Notes: generated by a model not told the origin, from the letters alone. DNA of 55,492 bases from Octopus bimaculoides (GCF_001194135.2 NC_068999.1:33102412-33157903), one strand, 5' to 3'; counted from the first letter of the stretch, positions 78 to 35,762 are shown. Made by a program: numbers and translations.

Positions 78-283
78 TGACGGTGCCATGTAAAAGCACT
101 CATGCCTGTGTCGCATAAAAGCACCTGGTACACTCTGCAAAATGGTTGGCATTAGGAAGAGCATCCATCTGTAAAAACCAGACAAATGGAACCAGGGCAC
201 CCCTCCAGCTGGCCAACTCATGTGAAACTGTCCACCCATGTGAGCATGGGGTACTGACTTTAAAAGATGATGATGATGATGAT
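78..283 (+). mobile_element. 5'-truncated RTE-type LINE 3' tail ending in (GAT)n
   Basis: GGTTGGCATTAGGAAGAGCATCC...CCCATG...GATGATGAT, the same tail that directly follows RTE coding sequence at 52070-52475. Confidence 0.75.
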
Positions 284-456
284 ATTTTCCTCAAACACTC
301 TCTCTAATTCTTTTCTCTTATCACAAACACATACTCTCTTCCATCTCAGACTTTCAGTGGATATTATAATATTAATCAGTCAGTTACTCCTTGCTGAAGG
401 TATATTAGTACAAGGCCACCCTTATTTCACTACCATCTTCTCATCTGTATTTACAG

Positions 457-629
457 ATACTACCCGACAACGGAGAGAGAACGAAGTTGATGCCCGTGAC
501 TACCATTTTGTTGCATCTCGAGAGCAAATGGAGCGAGACATTCAAAACCATCTTTTCATTGAAGCTGGCCAGTACAATGACAATCTTTACGGAACTAGTG
601 TTGCATCAGTGAAGGAAGTTGCAGAAAAG
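457..629 (+). CDS. dlg1: Discs large (MAGUK) GUK-domain exon, first of four visible; upstream exons lie outside the window
   Basis: TTACAG acceptor and AAG|GTAGGC donor. Reads (H)[57 protein letters not shown], which closely matches the Dlg GUK GMP-binding subdomain. Confidence 0.97.
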
Positions 630-1179
630 GTAGGCTACTCTCCACATTTATTTACACTTTTCCTTCTATGATGCGTATTTTTCATCAACACTATTCTTCC
701 TATCTCTACTGGGTATAAACTGGATGTTTGGTTAGTTACACTTGAATAATGTTTGCCGATATACCCCAGTTACCATATTTGGGTATGATTAAAATGTTGT
801 GCCTCTGTTTTTAAATTTAATGCTTAATCTTATGAAAACAGTCACTGTATATACTCCTTCAAAGGTTTAGATTCACGAGTCAGATGGCCAAAATATCTCC
901 AGTCATTTTTGAACAGTGGACATAGACCTTAGGATTACACATAACGAAAAGACTTGAGCTCTGTTCACTAAAAATCATATACGTCTGATGTTTAGATTGG
1001 AGACACTATCTGTCTTTAATACTTGGGAAGTTGGCATTAGGGAAGATGGTTGAAAAACTTGAAATTTAAGTATTAGTTACCTACCCCCTCTACACACACA
1101 CAAACACATCTTCAGCTTGATAAAAATTAAACTATGGTTAATCTCCTGTTTTAAAATGTTCTGAATGTTCTTTCTTCAG

Positions 1180-23039: not shown

Positions 23040-23990
23040 AAACTCCTTGTCAGCCCTGTTAGAGAAATACAAAGGCTACAGGATAAGATCTTTTGGGGAG
23101 AGAAAAATTCTTGTTTTCACTTTTTTTGTTGGTGACCTTAACCTTTACTTGAGTAATATTCAGAACACCAAGAGACAATTGGTTGCAGTGTTCTCACAAG
23201 ACATAGGAATGGAATTTAGCCAGGATATGTGTTCATACTTGGTTGTCAAATGAGGAAAGATTGTTGAACAGACAAGAAATTTGGCTATTGTTAGCCTGTC
23301 TTCTTTATCTCCAGTGGTGAATTTTGCAAATATATCAGAAATGATGGGAACATTGCATACATTGGTACTGTGGGTAAAGCTAGAGTGACAAAAGAATACT
23401 TAAGCTGACTGGGCAAGATACAGAAGTCAGGGCTGTCTGAATTCAATAGAACTATATCTCACAATGCTTTTGTAATGCCAGTACTAGTACCCACATCTGA
23501 GATACTAGACTGGACACTTGAAGACATCAGGACTAAGATAAATAGCAATGACTGGTAATTCAACAGTGACAGGACCTAGGTTGATTGGTTGGTTGGTTGG
23601 TTGGTCGGTCGGTTGGTTGGTTGGTCGGTCGGTTGGTTGGTTGGTTAGTTGGTTGGTTGGTTGGTTGGTTGGTCGGATGGTTGGTTGGTTGGTTGGTTGG
23701 AGAGATGGACAGACAGTCTTTGAGTGCTGCATCATAGCACTTAGACAAAACTTGCTGAAAAGAAAGGCTATGCATTTGCTGTCCATGTACAAGTGATAGT
23801 TACTAAATATTTATTTGATCAAGAAAGATAAAGGTGACTCTAGGCTTTCACATTGCAATAGAAAATGTTGATTGTACCATACAATATCTGTATGAGAAAT
23901 GACATTGTTGCATACACTATCTAAAGATTGTTCTGATGGCCATACCAAAAACACACGAGGACCAGAATGTTTAAAAATAAAGAACACTGG
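23040..23990 (+). mobile_element. Highly decayed R4/Dong-like non-LTR retrotransposon fragment, split by (GGTT)n
   Basis: Relic motifs FFVGDLNLY (ancestral FxDDLKLY), FSQDIGMEF, HNAFVMPVL..EILDWT, then [17 protein letters not shown] and MRNDIVA (zinc knuckle/RHD relic). Confidence 0.65.
23579..23700. repeat. (GGTT)n microsatellite with GGTC variants
   Basis: Directly visible. Confidence 0.95.
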
Positions 23991-24651: not shown

Positions 24652-25933
24652 TATCAGGTTAAGTAAAAAGTAAACAACGTTTTGAACCATGAAGAATTTG
24701 TACCAGATTCTTGCAGAGTTTTGAATTTTTTTAACATATTTTTGCAATTGTCTGATAATACAGACATAAACTTGCCCAGCAGCATCAATAAATTAAAATT
24801 GATATTATTTTCACCATTGTTATAATAATCTGAAATGAAATTGTCAAAGCGCAATATTTGAGCAATTTTGCTATTCAACTTCAAAAGAAGGACATAAAGC
24901 AGCTGAAACTGCTTGCAATATCAATGAAATGTTTGGTGAGGAAATGACCAGTGGGTGTTCAGCTCAAAAATGGTTTAAATGATTTTACAGTGGAGATCTG
25001 AGCCTTAAAGATTCTGAGTAAAGTGGATGCTCATCTGTCATCGATGACGGTCAATTAAAGACCGTCATTGAGAAAGATCCACATAAAACCACTCAAGAAC
25101 TGGCAAAAATCTTCAGGTTAGCCAGAAAACTGCCTGCAACCATTTGCGTGCAATTGAAAAATCAAAAAATCTCAACAAATGGGTACCATACGATTTGAAT
25201 GAAAATCAGAAAATGCACAGATATGAAATTTGCTTGTCACTTCTTCTCTGTAACCAGGCTGATCCATTTTCAACTGTATTGTAACTTGCAATGGAAAGTG
25301 GATTCTGTGCAATAATAAAAAAACATCCTTTGCAGTGATTGGACCAAAATGGAGCACTGAAAACCTTCCCTAAACCTGAGCCCTTCAAAAAGAAGGTTAT
25401 GGTGACTGTTTGGCGGTGTACTGTTGGACTCATCCACTAAAACTTCTTAAAACCCAGATAAACCATTACTGAAGAAACCTATTGCCATGAAATTGCCAAA
25501 ATGAACAAAAAACTGCTACTCCTCCTTCCCAGACTGGTTAACAGAAGAGGGCCAATCATTCTTCATAACAATGCTTGCCCACATGTTTCACTAATAATGC
25601 TCCAGAGGTTGATGGATCTTGGCTACAAAGTTCTTCCCCACCCAGCTTATTCCCCAGACCTTTCTCCTACCGACTACCATATTTTCAAGCACCTTGATGG
25701 TTTCCTGCAAAAGAAGGAGTTCAAAAATCAAACCGATGCTGAAAATGCATTCAAAGAGTTCATCAGCTCCAGAACTCCAGATTTTTGTTACCAGAATAAA
25801 CAAACTTGTAACTCATTGACAAAAATGTATTGGTTGTAATGGTACTTAGATAAATAAAATTTCCGCATTGTTAAAATATATTGTGATGAATTTCATGTTT
25901 CAAAACATTGCTTACTTTTCACTCAGACTGACA
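24652..25933 (+). mobile_element. Full-length mariner transposon relic (about 1.28 kb)
   Basis: Ends 24650-24693 and 25892-25935 are reverse complements (36 of 44 match, including the flanking TA dinucleotides); contains a decayed transposase. Confidence 0.92.
24835..25855 (+). pseudogene. Mariner DD34D transposase pseudogene
   Basis: ATG at 24835; motifs WVPYDL, TCNGKW (from TGDEKW), LHNNA (from LHDNA) and HPAYSPDLSPTDYH; several stops and frameshifts. Confidence 0.93.
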
Positions 25934-32383: not shown

Positions 32384-32429
32384 ATAAAAATATAGCGGCA
32401 TACGTACACTTTGGTCTCTTATATGTAAG

Positions 32430-32519
<90 letters not shown>

Positions 32520-32914
32520 CCCTTAGGGGTCAGCCACATTTAAGTGGCAAATATACTTCACTTTGTCGTGCAGTTACTGTTAATACCTCGTTCAGAGATT
32601 TAACATTGCTTGTTTTCACTTTTTCAAGATCAGTGAATAATTTCACTGGAAAAGGCTATGTATATTTGCAAAGAAATATCTTTCGCATTGAAGGTCGGCG
32701 ATTGTCGTACGCTGAGGACGGGAAAATACCCAGAAACTCGAGTCCGTACGTATCGCAGATCAAGATGGGAAAGATAACTTCCCTTTGCAAATATAGACAG
32801 GACACAGATGTGTGTCGATAGCCAGCTGGAGGGGATGTTCTCCTGGGACTAAAAGCAACAGTAACACCCACCCATAGGGTCAGCCACATTTAAGTTGCAA
32901 ATATACTTCACTTT
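32520..32914 (+). mobile_element. 350-bp hammerhead-containing repeat unit (about 1.1 copies; retrozyme-like)
   Basis: GGTCAGCCACATTTAAG recurs at a 350-bp interval (32531 vs 32881), giving about 45-bp terminal redundancy; flanked by TA-rich microsatellite. Confidence 0.75.
32698..32756 (+). ncRNA. Type I hammerhead ribozyme
   Basis: gcgat-tgt-cgtacg CTGAGGA c-ggg-aaaata-ccc-a GAAA ctcgag TC cgtacg-t-atcgc. Core 32712-32718, GAAA 32733-32736, GUC triplet 32742-32744; predicted cut after 32744. Confidence 0.85.
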
Positions 32915-32948
32915 ATATATATTTGTATATGGATATATATGTATGTAT

Positions 32949-33291
32949 AAGCAATGTTAATTCTCTAAATGAAGTATTAACAGTAACTGCACGATAAAGT
33001 GTAGTATATTGCCACTTAAGTGTGGCTGACCCCTAGGGGTGGATGTTACTGTTGCTTTTAGCCCCAGGAGGACATCTCCTCCAGCTGGCTTATCGACACA
33101 CGACTGTGTCCTGTTTGCCAAGGGAAGTTATCCCTCTCACCACGATCTGCAGCACGAACGGATCCGGATTTCAGGGTTATTTCCCTTCGTCGGCGTTTGA
33201 TAGCTGCTGACCTTGGTGAGAGAGACAAAAACCTGGCAATCTTATATCTACTTTTCCAGTGAAATTCTTCACTGATATCGAAAAGGTGAAA
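32949..33291 (-). mobile_element. Diverged, circularly permuted copy of the 350-bp unit, running into a gap
   Basis: On minus it starts mid-unit (TTTCACCTTTTCGATATCAGTG, equivalent to about 32613), crosses the unit junction (CCCCTAGGGGTCAGCC) and ends at AACATTGCTT (equivalent to about 32611). Confidence 0.75.
33149..33207 (-). ncRNA. Type I hammerhead ribozyme (U4C core variant)
   Basis: Minus strand reads gcagc-tatca-aacg CCGACGA aggg-aaataa-ccct GAAA tccgga TC cgtt-cgt-gctgc; AUC triplet at plus 33161-33163. Confidence 0.8.
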
Positions 33292-33780
33292 NNNNNNNNN
33301 NNNNNNNNNNNNNNNNNNNNNNNNNNNNNNNNNNNNNNNNNNNNNNNNNNNNNNNNNNNNNNNNNNNNNNNNNNNNNNNNNNNNNNNNNNNNNNNNNNNN
33401 NNNNNNNNNNNNNNNNNNNNNNNNNNNNNNNNNNNNNNNNNNNNNNNNNNNNNNNNNNNNNNNNNNNNNNNNNNNNNNNNNNNNNNNNNNNNNNNNNNNN
33501 NNNNNNNNNNNNNNNNNNNNNNNNNNNNNNNNNNNNNNNNNNNNNNNNNNNNNNNNNNNNNNNNNNNNNNNNNNNNNNNNNNNNNNNNNNNNNNNNNNNN
33601 NNNNNNNNNNNNNNNNNNNNNNNNNNNNNNNNNNNNNNNNNNNNNNNNNNNNNNNNNNNNNNNNNNNNNCTAAAAGCAACAGTAACACCCACCCATAGGG
33701 TCAGCCACATTTAAGTTGCAAATATACTTCACTTTATATATATTTGTATATGGATATATATGTATGTATGTATATATATG

Positions 33781-34994
33781 ACACTTCCACACTCGTTTGT
33801 CTGGCTGAACTTGTCCTCTCACTCAAATGCTTCTTGTTCGCTGATGATTTTTACCAGCATTTATCGGGAGTGGCCATGGGAACGAGAATGGGCCCCAACT
33901 ATGTGAACCTGTTCGTTGGCTACGTTGAGGCCCAAATATTCTCAAGTTTCACTAGTCCCACTCCCGAACTATATGGCCGTTATATTGACAACTGAATTGG
34001 TGCGACCTCACTCTCCCACGAACATCTAGACTCCTTCCTCTCTTTTGTCCAATCTTTCCATCCTGCCCTCCACTTCTCCTGCTGTATCTCTGAAACCTCT
34101 GTCTCCTTTCTTGACATTTCGGTCAGCATTCATCACTCCACTCTCACCACCTCCATCCACTACAAACACACAGACTTACACTCATACCACAACTTCTCCT
34201 CCTCCCATCCTAAACACACCAAGCTTTCCATCCCCTATTCCCAATTCCTCTGTCTACACAGGCTCTGTAGTGACGATCATGACTGTGAGACTCAATCTCA
34301 ACTCATGGCTCGTCACTTCATCCTACGTGGATATCCTCTCACCACTATCCACACTGCCCTTGCCAGAGCACGTTCCATGGACCATGCATCTGCTCTCTCC
34401 CTGCTCTCCTGCCCACGCTGCTGCACTTGGCCTTACCTCTCCAATACGACCTCCGCACCGGTACCCAGCATCACCGACTCTTTCACCTGCACTTCTACCA
34501 ATGTCATCTACTGCATCTGTTCTCTCTGCCCTTCTCTATACATTGGGCAAACGGGACACCGCTTGGATGACCGGTTTGTGGAACACCTCCAAGACATCCG
34601 ACTCGGCAATGACACCCCAGTCTCACGCCATTTCTGCTCTACCGGTCAATATTTGCAACACCTGTCTGTGTGCGGATTGTCCTTGCACAGGGACCACCCG
34701 GACTCCCGTTTGCGCCGTGAACAGGGATTAATCTTCTTTCTTTGCTCCTTTGCACCACACGGGCTCAACTCTCCTCTCCTCTCTCCTTCTCCTCTCCCCC
34801 CCTCACACCTACTTCCTTCCACCCACCCACCTCTCCTCTCTTGCTCCAACTCCTACTTCTCTTCACTCCTACTCTCCTTCTCTCTTCTCTTCACTCTTAC
34901 CCACCCTCTCCTTCCTCTTCATCGTCACCCCTCCCTCATAACCCAACCCCACCCCTACACAATCCAACCCCACCTTCTCTATCTATCCCATCCC
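33781..34994 (+). mobile_element. 5'-truncated Penelope-like element (RT plus GIY-YIG endonuclease), Neptune-like
   Basis: One frame with one stop (33993-33995): GVAMGTRMGP, RYIDN (from YIDD), FLDISV, HPKHTK..IPYSQF, then SCPRCCTWP, CTSTNVIYCI..C..LYIGQTGHRLDDRFVEHL, SRHF, R..E..LIF...PHGLN; CT-rich tail runs into a gap. Confidence 0.93.
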
Positions 34995-35762
34995 NNNNNN
35001 NNNNNNNNNNNNNNNNNNNNNNNNNNNNNNNNNNNNNNNNNNNNNNNNNNNNNNNNNNNNNNNNNNNNNNNNNNNNNNNNNNNNNNNNNNNNNNNNNNNN
35101 NNNNNNNNNNNNNNNNNNNNNNNNNNNNNNNNNNNNNNNNNNNNNNNNNNNNNNNNNNNNNNNNNNNNNNNNNNNNNNNNNNNNNNNNNNNNNNNNNNNN
35201 NNNNNNNNNNNNNNNNNNNNNNNNNNNNNNNNNNNNNNNNNNNNNNNNNNNNNNNNNNNNNNNNNNNNNNNNNNNNNNNNNNNNNNNNNNNNNNNNNNNN
35301 NNNNNNNNNNNNNNNNNNNNNNNNNNNNNNNNNNNNNNNNNNNNNNNNNNNNNNNNNNNNNNNNNNNNNNNNNNNNNNNNNNNNNNNNNNNNNNNNNNNN
35401 NNNNNNNNNNNNNNNNNNNNNNNNNNNNNNNNNNNNNNNNNNNNNNNNNNNNNNNNNNNNNNNNNNNNNNNNNNNNNNNNNNNNNNNNNNNNNNNNNNNN
35501 NNNNNNNNNNNNNNNNNNNNNNNNNNNNNNNNNNNNNNNNNNNNNNNNNNNNNNNNNNNNNNNNNNNNNNNNNNNNNNNNNNNNNNNNNNNNNNNNNNNN
35601 NNNNNNNNNNNNNNNNNNNNNNNNNNNNNNNNNNNNNNNNNNNNNNNNNNNNNNNNNNNNNNNNNNNNNNNNNNNNNNNNNNNNNNNNNNNNNNNNNNNN
35701 NNNNNNNNNNNNNNNNNNNNNNNNNNNNNNNNNNNNNNNNNNNNNNNNNNNNNNNNNNNNNN

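Follow-up and report, generated by a model that had tools for sequence, protein, structure and literature searches.

The canonical type I hammerhead ribozyme of metazoan genomes is active as a dimer and is built from helices of 6 bp (helix I), 4 bp (helix II) and 1-2 bp (helix III), the last of which ends in a small palindromic loop (PMC4209133). In the minimal hammerheads (min-HHRs) from the pseudo-LTRs of Penelope-like elements (PLEs), helix I is short, helix II comprises 6-8 bp, A9 is followed by one additional nucleotide, and helix III is 2 nt long or absent (PMC4209133). Hammerhead families rich in covariation have already been described in animal genomes, including pairs on opposite strands at distances of 100-700 bp (PMC4209133). 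In animals, canonical type I hammerheads are located in non-LTR retrozymes (PMC7229834). These are self-paired elements of about 150-450 bp with a GC content below 45% that are found together with PLEs (PMC7229834; bioRxiv 10.64898/2026.07.22.740005), and they give rise to circular RNAs (PMC7229834). A 2026 preprint argues that retrozymes are non-autonomous PLE derivatives and related to pseudo-LTRs (bioRxiv 10.64898/2026.07.22.740005). PLE insertions are truncated at the 5' end and partially tandem, frequently have an inverted copy next to them and are biased towards microsatellites; they break assemblies, and they carry a 'tail' extension of 30-40 bp (PMC8557442).

Here, we analyzed a stretch of 55,492 nt from Octopus bimaculoides (in the following, the window), for which a preliminary description had proposed two hammerhead ribozymes on opposite strands. 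At both sites the sequence reads as described, and the RNA 5' ends predicted earlier match ours (Table 1). Our findings suggest, with a probability of about 0.72, that the two sites belong to diverged and decayed copies of a non-autonomous retroelement of about 350 nt, of the kind of the animal non-LTR retrozymes; both copies would have entered a TA/TG microsatellite, in opposite orientation and next to a 5'-truncated PLE.

Table 1 Coordinates of the hammerhead-bearing repeat, its motifs and the associated PLE features. Positions are those of the window unless a contig (L002 to L031) is named.
Feature	Position	Strand	Remarks
(TA)n(TG)n(TA)n microsatellite	32424-32519		abuts the 5' end of the (+) copy
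(+) copy of the ~350-nt hammerhead-bearing repeat	32520-32914	+	1.13 units; TA/TG microsatellite on both flanks
Rod-like helix I extension	32654-32823	+	MFE -90.3 kcal/mol, z -7.3
Rod helices, (+) copy	32654-32659/32818-32823, 32661-32673/32783-32795, 32677-32684/32769-32776, 32686-32689/32764-32767, 32693-32696/32758-32761		
(+) hammerhead domain, type I	32698-32756	+	cleavage predicted 32744|32745; predicted 5' end 32745
(+) distal helix I, GCGAU/AUCGC	32698-32702/32752-32756	+	
(+) proximal helix I, CGUACG/CGUACG	32706-32711/32745-32750	+	
(+) core, CUGAGGA	32712-32718	+	
(+) helix II, CGGG-AAAAUA-CCCA	32719-32732 (pairs 32719-32722/32729-32732)	+	C·A at base
(+) GAA (G12-A14)	32733-32735	+	
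(+) palindromic helix III, ACUCGAGU	32736-32743	+	C17 at 32744
TA-rich spacer between the facing 3' ends	32915-32948 (34 nt)		copies tail to tail
(-) copy of the repeat	32949-33291	-	5' part enters assembly gap 33292-33669
(-) hammerhead domain	33207-33149	-	cleavage predicted 33161|33160; predicted 5' end 33160
(-) helix I, distal GCAGC/GCUGC, proximal CAAACG/CGUUCG		-	one A·C at 33198·33156 (proximal)
(-) core, CCGACGA	33193-33187	-	U4C at 33192
(-) helix II, AGGG-AAAUAA-CCCU, then GAA		-	
(-) helix III, AUCCGGAU	33169-33162	-	C17 at 33161
Exact 100-nt duplicate of 32849-32948 (end of the (+) copy and TA-rich tract)	33670-33769	+	directly after the 378-N gap
5'-truncated PLE	33781-34769	+	C-terminal part of the RT, CxxC linker, GIY-YIG endonuclease
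34-nt minimal hammerhead, identical in three contigs	L002 7436-7469, L026 4263-4296, L027 3671-3704	-	different ENA samples
34-nt minimal hammerhead, second site in these contigs	L002 13497-13530, L026 6213-6246, L027 6290-6323	+	
Minimal hammerhead variant	L029 3772-3805	-	
Minimal hammerhead variant	L031 1899-1932	+	

Read in 5' to 3' direction, the (+) motif is GCGAU-UGU-CGUACG-CUGAGGA-CGGG-AAAAUA-CCCA-GAA-ACUCGAGU-C-CGUACG-U-AUCGC, and the (-) motif is GCAGC-UAU-CAAACG-CCGACGA-AGGG-AAAUAA-CCCU-GAA-AUCCGGAU-C-CGUUCG-U-GCUGC. Both have a 6-bp helix I with an internal loop, beyond which the helix adds another 5 bp (6+5 bp), a 4-bp helix II and an 8-nt palindromic helix III. The three helices surround the core, and helix I is the open one, where the 5' and 3' ends lie. 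The (+) copy matches every position of the conserved core (C3 U4 G5 A6 N7 G8 A9, G12 A13 A14, A15.1-U16.1, H17), and the (-) copy meets all of them except U4, which is a C. The G10.1-C11.1 pair is absent from both copies, its place being taken by C·A in the (+) copy (32719·32732) and by A-U in the (-) copy (33186·33173); this closing pair of helix II is a usual, not an absolute, feature of hammerheads. The internal loop UGU/U, after 6 bp of helix I, and the 6-nt loop 2 are at the right positions for contacts between loop 1 and loop 2. Judged by its sequence, this architecture is that of the canonical metazoan type I hammerhead of non-LTR retrozymes, for which cleavage would be expected in the dimer.

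The preliminary description had assigned one defect to each copy. This holds for the (+) copy, which has the C·A at 10.1/11.1 and a complete core, but the (-) copy has two defects, U4C and the A·C in proximal helix I. The defects of each copy fall where the other one is intact. A single CpG-to-CpA change may account for the C·A, and another one for the A·C, and the defects of both copies look like decay after insertion. The best reading remains that of decayed members of a once-active family, much as the preliminary description had proposed.

A structural descriptor identified only these two sites in the 55 kb, compared to 0.033 expected per dinucleotide shuffle of the window, and the bare core pattern with this spacing occurred once in the window compared to 0.01 expected. 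Rfam gave no match over the whole window at gathering thresholds. When the 77 nt of the (+) copy were searched alone, the best match among 4227 Rfam families was RF00163 (Hammerhead_1), the family of newt satellite 2, Schistosoma Sm-alpha and the cricket hammerhead, with 20.0 bits against a gathering score of 34 and an E-value of 0.0056, which refers to this small 77-nt search. All 45 positions of the model are aligned, among them the zero-loop 8-nt helix III that the RF00163 consensus shares in shape with the motifs of the window, and helix II is left unscored by the model. For the (-) copy, Rfam returned no hammerhead match. The comparison with Hammerhead_1 that had been put forward earlier thus recovered the (+) copy below threshold, and neither the (-) copy nor the scan of the whole window at gathering thresholds yielded a match. 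As a calibration, we used hammerhead motifs from PLE loci: a 34-nt motif located about 100 nt after a PLE reading frame (L026, L027), which we found with a descriptor of our own, gave no Rfam hammerhead match, and another one beside a related PLE scored 29.8 bits versus 52 in Rfam. Because Rfam misses or under-scores hammerhead motifs beside related PLEs, the sub-threshold result is weak evidence against the motifs of the window.

Further copies were sought in several ways. A covariance model built from the two copies detected no additional one in the window or in eight PLE loci. A scan of JGI metagenomes with a pattern of core and helix II returned three GC-rich chance matches, none of which was a hammerhead; two scans of viral contigs for family members gave no match, and a scan of prokaryotic genomes with an 18-mer resulted in 20 chance matches without wider similarity. 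No match was obtained in a protein search with a spurious reading frame across the unit, by which called ORFs in other copies were sought.

The two hammerhead copies have equal lengths, and their gap-free alignment of 59 columns contains 20 differences. When the hammerhead structure with its 19 pairs was imposed on both, 94.7% of the cells were paired. In six of the 19 pairs both partners are different and pairing is nonetheless retained; distal helix I contributes three of these pairs, helix III two and proximal helix I one, and together they account for 12 of the 20 differences. None of the six slid controls contained such a compensated pair. In simulations with 20 random substitutions on the 59 nt of the (+) copy, at least six compensated pairs arose with P of about 2-3e-5 (2-3 per 100,000 trials), with or without transitions being favored. 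The unpaired core positions are identical between the copies save U4 and the free N7. The covariation, which had been noticed in the preliminary description, is far beyond chance, and it rests on two homologous copies within the window; since only two (perhaps three) such copies are at hand, it is a single pairwise comparison and not a family alignment.

Both hammerheads are situated in the arms of an inverted repeat that is built from two copies, about 77% identical, of one unit of about 350 nt with a GC content of 42.3%. Two hammerheads are present, as had been claimed, but they are not independent: being homologous and forming the two arms of one inverted repeat, they represent two sightings of a single family. 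The last 44-45 nt of the (+) copy repeat its first 45 nt, which gives a direct repeat (32527-32564/32877-32914) with a spacing of 350 nt. The microsatellite that abuts its 5' end is the likely insertion target of this copy. ARAGORN found no tRNA-like part in the unit, and a SINE or tRNA-derived origin is thus without support. No two hammerheads occur in tandem on one strand within the window; the (+) copy contains one, and a further (+) copy may be located inside the gap 33292-33669. In the absence of a same-strand pair, the tandem arrangement that defines retrozymes is only hinted at by the copy of 1.13 units. The 100-nt duplicate behind the gap is either a third (+) copy or assembly redundancy. 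It is exact, while the true copies of the repeat are only about 77% alike, which suggests redundancy or a misjoin in the assembly around the inverted repeat, or else a very recent duplication. As the inverted junction borders both the gap and this exact duplicate, the local arrangement may partly be an assembly artefact.

The surrounding sequence has a GC content of 36.6% over the window and contains ten runs of N, abundant TA/TG microsatellites and transposon debris. Simple repeats of TA, TG and TC are unusually frequent in it, and most of the assembly gaps adjoin them; a (GGTT)n microsatellite of about 30 copies is found at 23579-23700. A second inverted repeat is located upstream of the hammerhead copies, with arms of 133 nt (31700-31832/32262-32394) that are 91% complementary and 429 nt apart. 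It is bounded by TA/TG microsatellite, contains no hammerhead and resembles an insertion of the foldback or MITE-like type, or else a further pair of inverted retroelements. At 267-671 (+), the window harbors a guanylate-kinase exon of a DLG/MAGUK protein (Pfam PF00625, E 2.9e-22), which we take to be nearly identical to insect Dlg1, a hint of an arthropod or another protostome as host. The best matches of this exon in a protein search were short ORFs with identities of up to 97%. An open reading frame at 25501-25839 (+), for which Pfam gave no match at E<=0.01, ends in ...PHPAYSPDLSPTDYHIFKHLDGFLQKK..., presumably resembling the C-terminal part of mariner/Tc1 transposases.

In RNA folding, each copy forms a long rod with imperfect pairing, which carries the hammerhead at the tip (z -7.3 for the (+) copy and -5.8 for the (-) copy). 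The homologous rod helices are kept in the (-) copy with different sequence, and compensated changes also occur in the rod outside the hammerhead (UUGCAAAG/CUUUGCAA versus UUGCCAGG/CUUGGCAA; CAUU/GAUG versus CACCA/UGGUG). A GGUC/GAUC helix with a G·U pair is conserved, which points to the sense RNA as the folded strand. The 350-nt monomer folded as a circle has 63% of its bases paired (z -5.5), and its lowest-energy fold pairs part of the core (CUGAG). In a cofold of the homodimer, the core is free, helix II is formed and the palindromes make an 8-bp helix III, with -41.5 compared to 2 x -18.7 kcal/mol. This double-hammerhead logic is known for the hammerheads of newt and avocado viroid, and a double hammerhead via the palindromic helix III is predicted by the cofold for the copies of the window. 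The span of 772 nt with both copies folds into one long hairpin (-408 kcal/mol, z -26.6); according to this model, a transcript running through both copies would form a hairpin of about 300 bp in which both ribozymes would be buried. A search of 691 nt against Rfam at E<=10 yielded only sub-threshold matches to long-hairpin miRNA families of plants and animals at 32851-33060 (MIR6217 with 62.6 bits versus 110, MIR4208, MIR530), which are due to the inverted repeat and not to homology.

The adjacent PLE fragment is located about 600 nt from the hammerhead copies and starts, in the same orientation, 46 nt after the duplicated end of the (+) copy. Its coding homology extends over 33822-34769 with an in-frame stop at 33993-33995, and its 3' tail falls in the gap 34995-35762. 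As Pfam detected no family at E<=1 in the fragment itself, the identification rests on homologues: proteins carrying RVT_1, HTH_animal and GIY-YIG are matched with E 1e-93, and the identity to the homologue P0016 is 48% over the whole fragment. No stop is present where the relatives end, about 6 aa after PHGLN, and the frame continues through a CT-rich tract into the gap. The CxxC motif of the linker is CPRC, as in Neptune/Nematis-type linkers, which are mentioned with a CxxC in PMC8557442.

For seven of the PLE relatives contigs were used, and that of an eighth (P0023) is only 1.4 kb long. A descriptor scan revealed the minimal hammerhead GCUCUGACGAAGGGCUAACGCUCGAAACGUCAGC or a close variant in five of these contigs. 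It has the form CUGACGA-A-GGGC..GCUC-GAAACGUC with a 4-bp helix II and is positioned 100-800 nt after the reading frame (about 100-280 nt in L026, L027 and L031). L002, L026 and L027 possess a second copy on the opposite strand, and in the variant of L031 helix I is kept by a compensated change from GCU/AGC to UCU/AGA. The minimal hammerhead is absent from the window, and the model from the window's two copies matches none of the PLE-relative loci. The hammerheads of the window are therefore of the canonical (retrozyme) type and not of the minimal type of this PLE lineage, with the reservation that the tail of the window's own PLE lies in a gap. The earlier proposal that the motifs resemble Penelope-associated or retrozyme type I hammerheads with a small palindromic helix III agrees with the end-to-end alignment to RF00163, with the self-paired, low-GC repeat of about 350 nt, with the proximity of the PLE fragment and with the literature (PMC4209133, PMC7229834). 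The characteristics of PLE insertions (5' truncation, partial tandems, inverted neighbors, microsatellites and problems with assemblies; PMC8557442) can likewise all be seen at the locus.

The proximity of the PLE raises another explanation, according to which the units, rather than being an independent retrozyme, represent a pseudo-LTR or 3' tail left by extreme 5' truncation of a PLE, and the hammerhead serves the PLE itself by processing its transcript. Such an origin would fit the position and common orientation of the PLE fragment just behind the duplicated (+) copy end, and typical PLE insertions are in fact heavily 5'-truncated, partially tandem or inverted and targeted to microsatellites (PMC8557442); the 30-40 bp 'tail' extension (PMC8557442) may then correspond to the terminal repeat of 44 nt in the (+) copy. 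Hammerhead motifs do follow the reading frame in the relatives of this PLE, whose own tail is hidden in the gap, and retrozymes and pseudo-LTRs have been reported as related (bioRxiv 10.64898/2026.07.22.740005). However, the period of the unit is 350 nt as compared to 3-4 kb for a PLE, and no PLE coding sequence adjoins either copy. Since the PLE fragment is itself 5'-truncated and a microsatellite lies in between, unit and PLE look like separate insertions. In addition, the five PLE-relative loci carry a different, minimal hammerhead, and none like it occurs in the window, where the motif has the canonical retrozyme architecture without the long helix II and short helix I of the PLE minimal hammerheads (PMC4209133). 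We regard the origin from a PLE tail as unlikely, if quite conceivable.

It is very improbable that the motifs are no ribozymes at all, the rod hairpin being conserved for another function (for instance, to stabilize the RNA or to package a SINE-like repeat) and the core being coincidental. Such a coincidence would be in line with the sub-threshold or missing Rfam matches, with a non-canonical 10.1-11.1 pair in either copy, with the loss of U4 from one of them and with the lowest-energy rod of the monomer, which pairs part of the core. A coincidence would, however, leave unexplained that 12 helix positions changed in pairs when the unpaired core, U4 and the free N7 excepted, stayed the same, and chance would provide only 0.01 (core pattern) or 0.033 (full descriptor) occurrences per window. 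In its helix lengths and its palindromic helix III, the motif corresponds exactly to the known metazoan type (PMC4209133), a tRNA-like part was not found in the unit, and the silence of Rfam extends to hammerhead motifs beside related PLEs. Least probable of all, and hardly credible to us, is that the inverted pair is the functional unit, a read-through hairpin of about 300 bp feeding small-RNA pathways (hairpin RNA or miRNA-like) with the hammerheads as passengers. The 772-nt span does fold into one very stable hairpin with matches to long-hairpin miRNA families, but these matches are far below their gathering scores and fit any long inverted repeat. Moreover, an identity of only 77% between the arms is what would be expected of two old insertions that are independent of each other, an assembly gap lies directly at the inverted arrangement, and the compensatory changes within each arm would not be accounted for.

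The retrozyme reading implies a life cycle that we adopt from the literature on retrozymes. Tandem or multimeric copies would be transcribed, and two hammerhead domains may then pair by their 8-nt palindromic helix III into a double hammerhead that would cut after GUC or AUC (32744|32745 in the (+) copy). A host ligase would circularise the unit-length RNA, a PLE reverse transcriptase may copy the circle, more than once around, and the GIY-YIG nuclease of the PLE would integrate the copy, preferably into microsatellites. Selection on transcribed master copies could have kept hammerhead and rod while the two lineages diverged by about 23%, and the two copies would have decayed after their insertion. 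At the locus itself, no self-processing is expected, because neither copy has a partner on the same strand. A more far-reaching version, in which the unit belongs to a still-active retrozyme family that is mobilised by the neighboring CxxC-linker PLE lineage and aimed at TA microsatellites, the hammerhead perhaps works without G10.1-C11.1 and inverted pairs perhaps give rise to silencing dsRNA, appears improbable to us. If it were true, a natural trio of ribozyme circle, autonomous partner and host defence would be present in one genome.

Taken as decayed retrozyme copies, the pair illustrates cleanly, with two copies, how compensatory change maintains helices. The locus opens no new question. 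Rfam gathering thresholds miss this class of hammerheads, and descriptor-based scans or custom models are needed for annotation. Such copies cluster with PLEs in microsatellites and coincide with assembly gaps.

Among the known systems, Schistosoma Sm-alpha differs from the unit of the window in that no SINE-like or tRNA-like part was found in the latter. With the PLE pseudo-LTR min-HHRs (PMC4209133), the motifs share the association with PLEs, a palindromic helix III that would imply dimeric cleavage, families rich in compensatory changes and pairs on opposite strands a few hundred bases apart. They differ from them by the 4-bp helix II, the helix I of 6+5 bp and the 8-nt helix III. PLE pseudo-LTR hammerheads sit in the terminal repeat or tail of an element with RT and GIY-YIG; the units of the window adjoin a 5'-truncated PLE fragment with a microsatellite between, and the tail of this PLE falls in a gap. 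In comparison to the metazoan non-LTR retrozymes of coral, mussel and axolotl (PMC7229834), the window shows solo or partial copies without a multimeric tandem array, and both copies have core or helix defects, with C·A or A-U instead of G-C at 10.1-11.1. These retrozymes and the window have in common that a loop follows the 6-bp helix I, that helix II has 4 bp and that helix III consists of 2 bp and a palindromic tetraloop, equal to an 8-nt palindrome; they likewise share a unit of about 350 nt (42% GC here) forming a strongly self-paired rod, a genomic copy of more than unit length and PLEs in the same genome. The element is another lineage-specific family in the large, already described set of hammerhead-bearing retroelements of animals.
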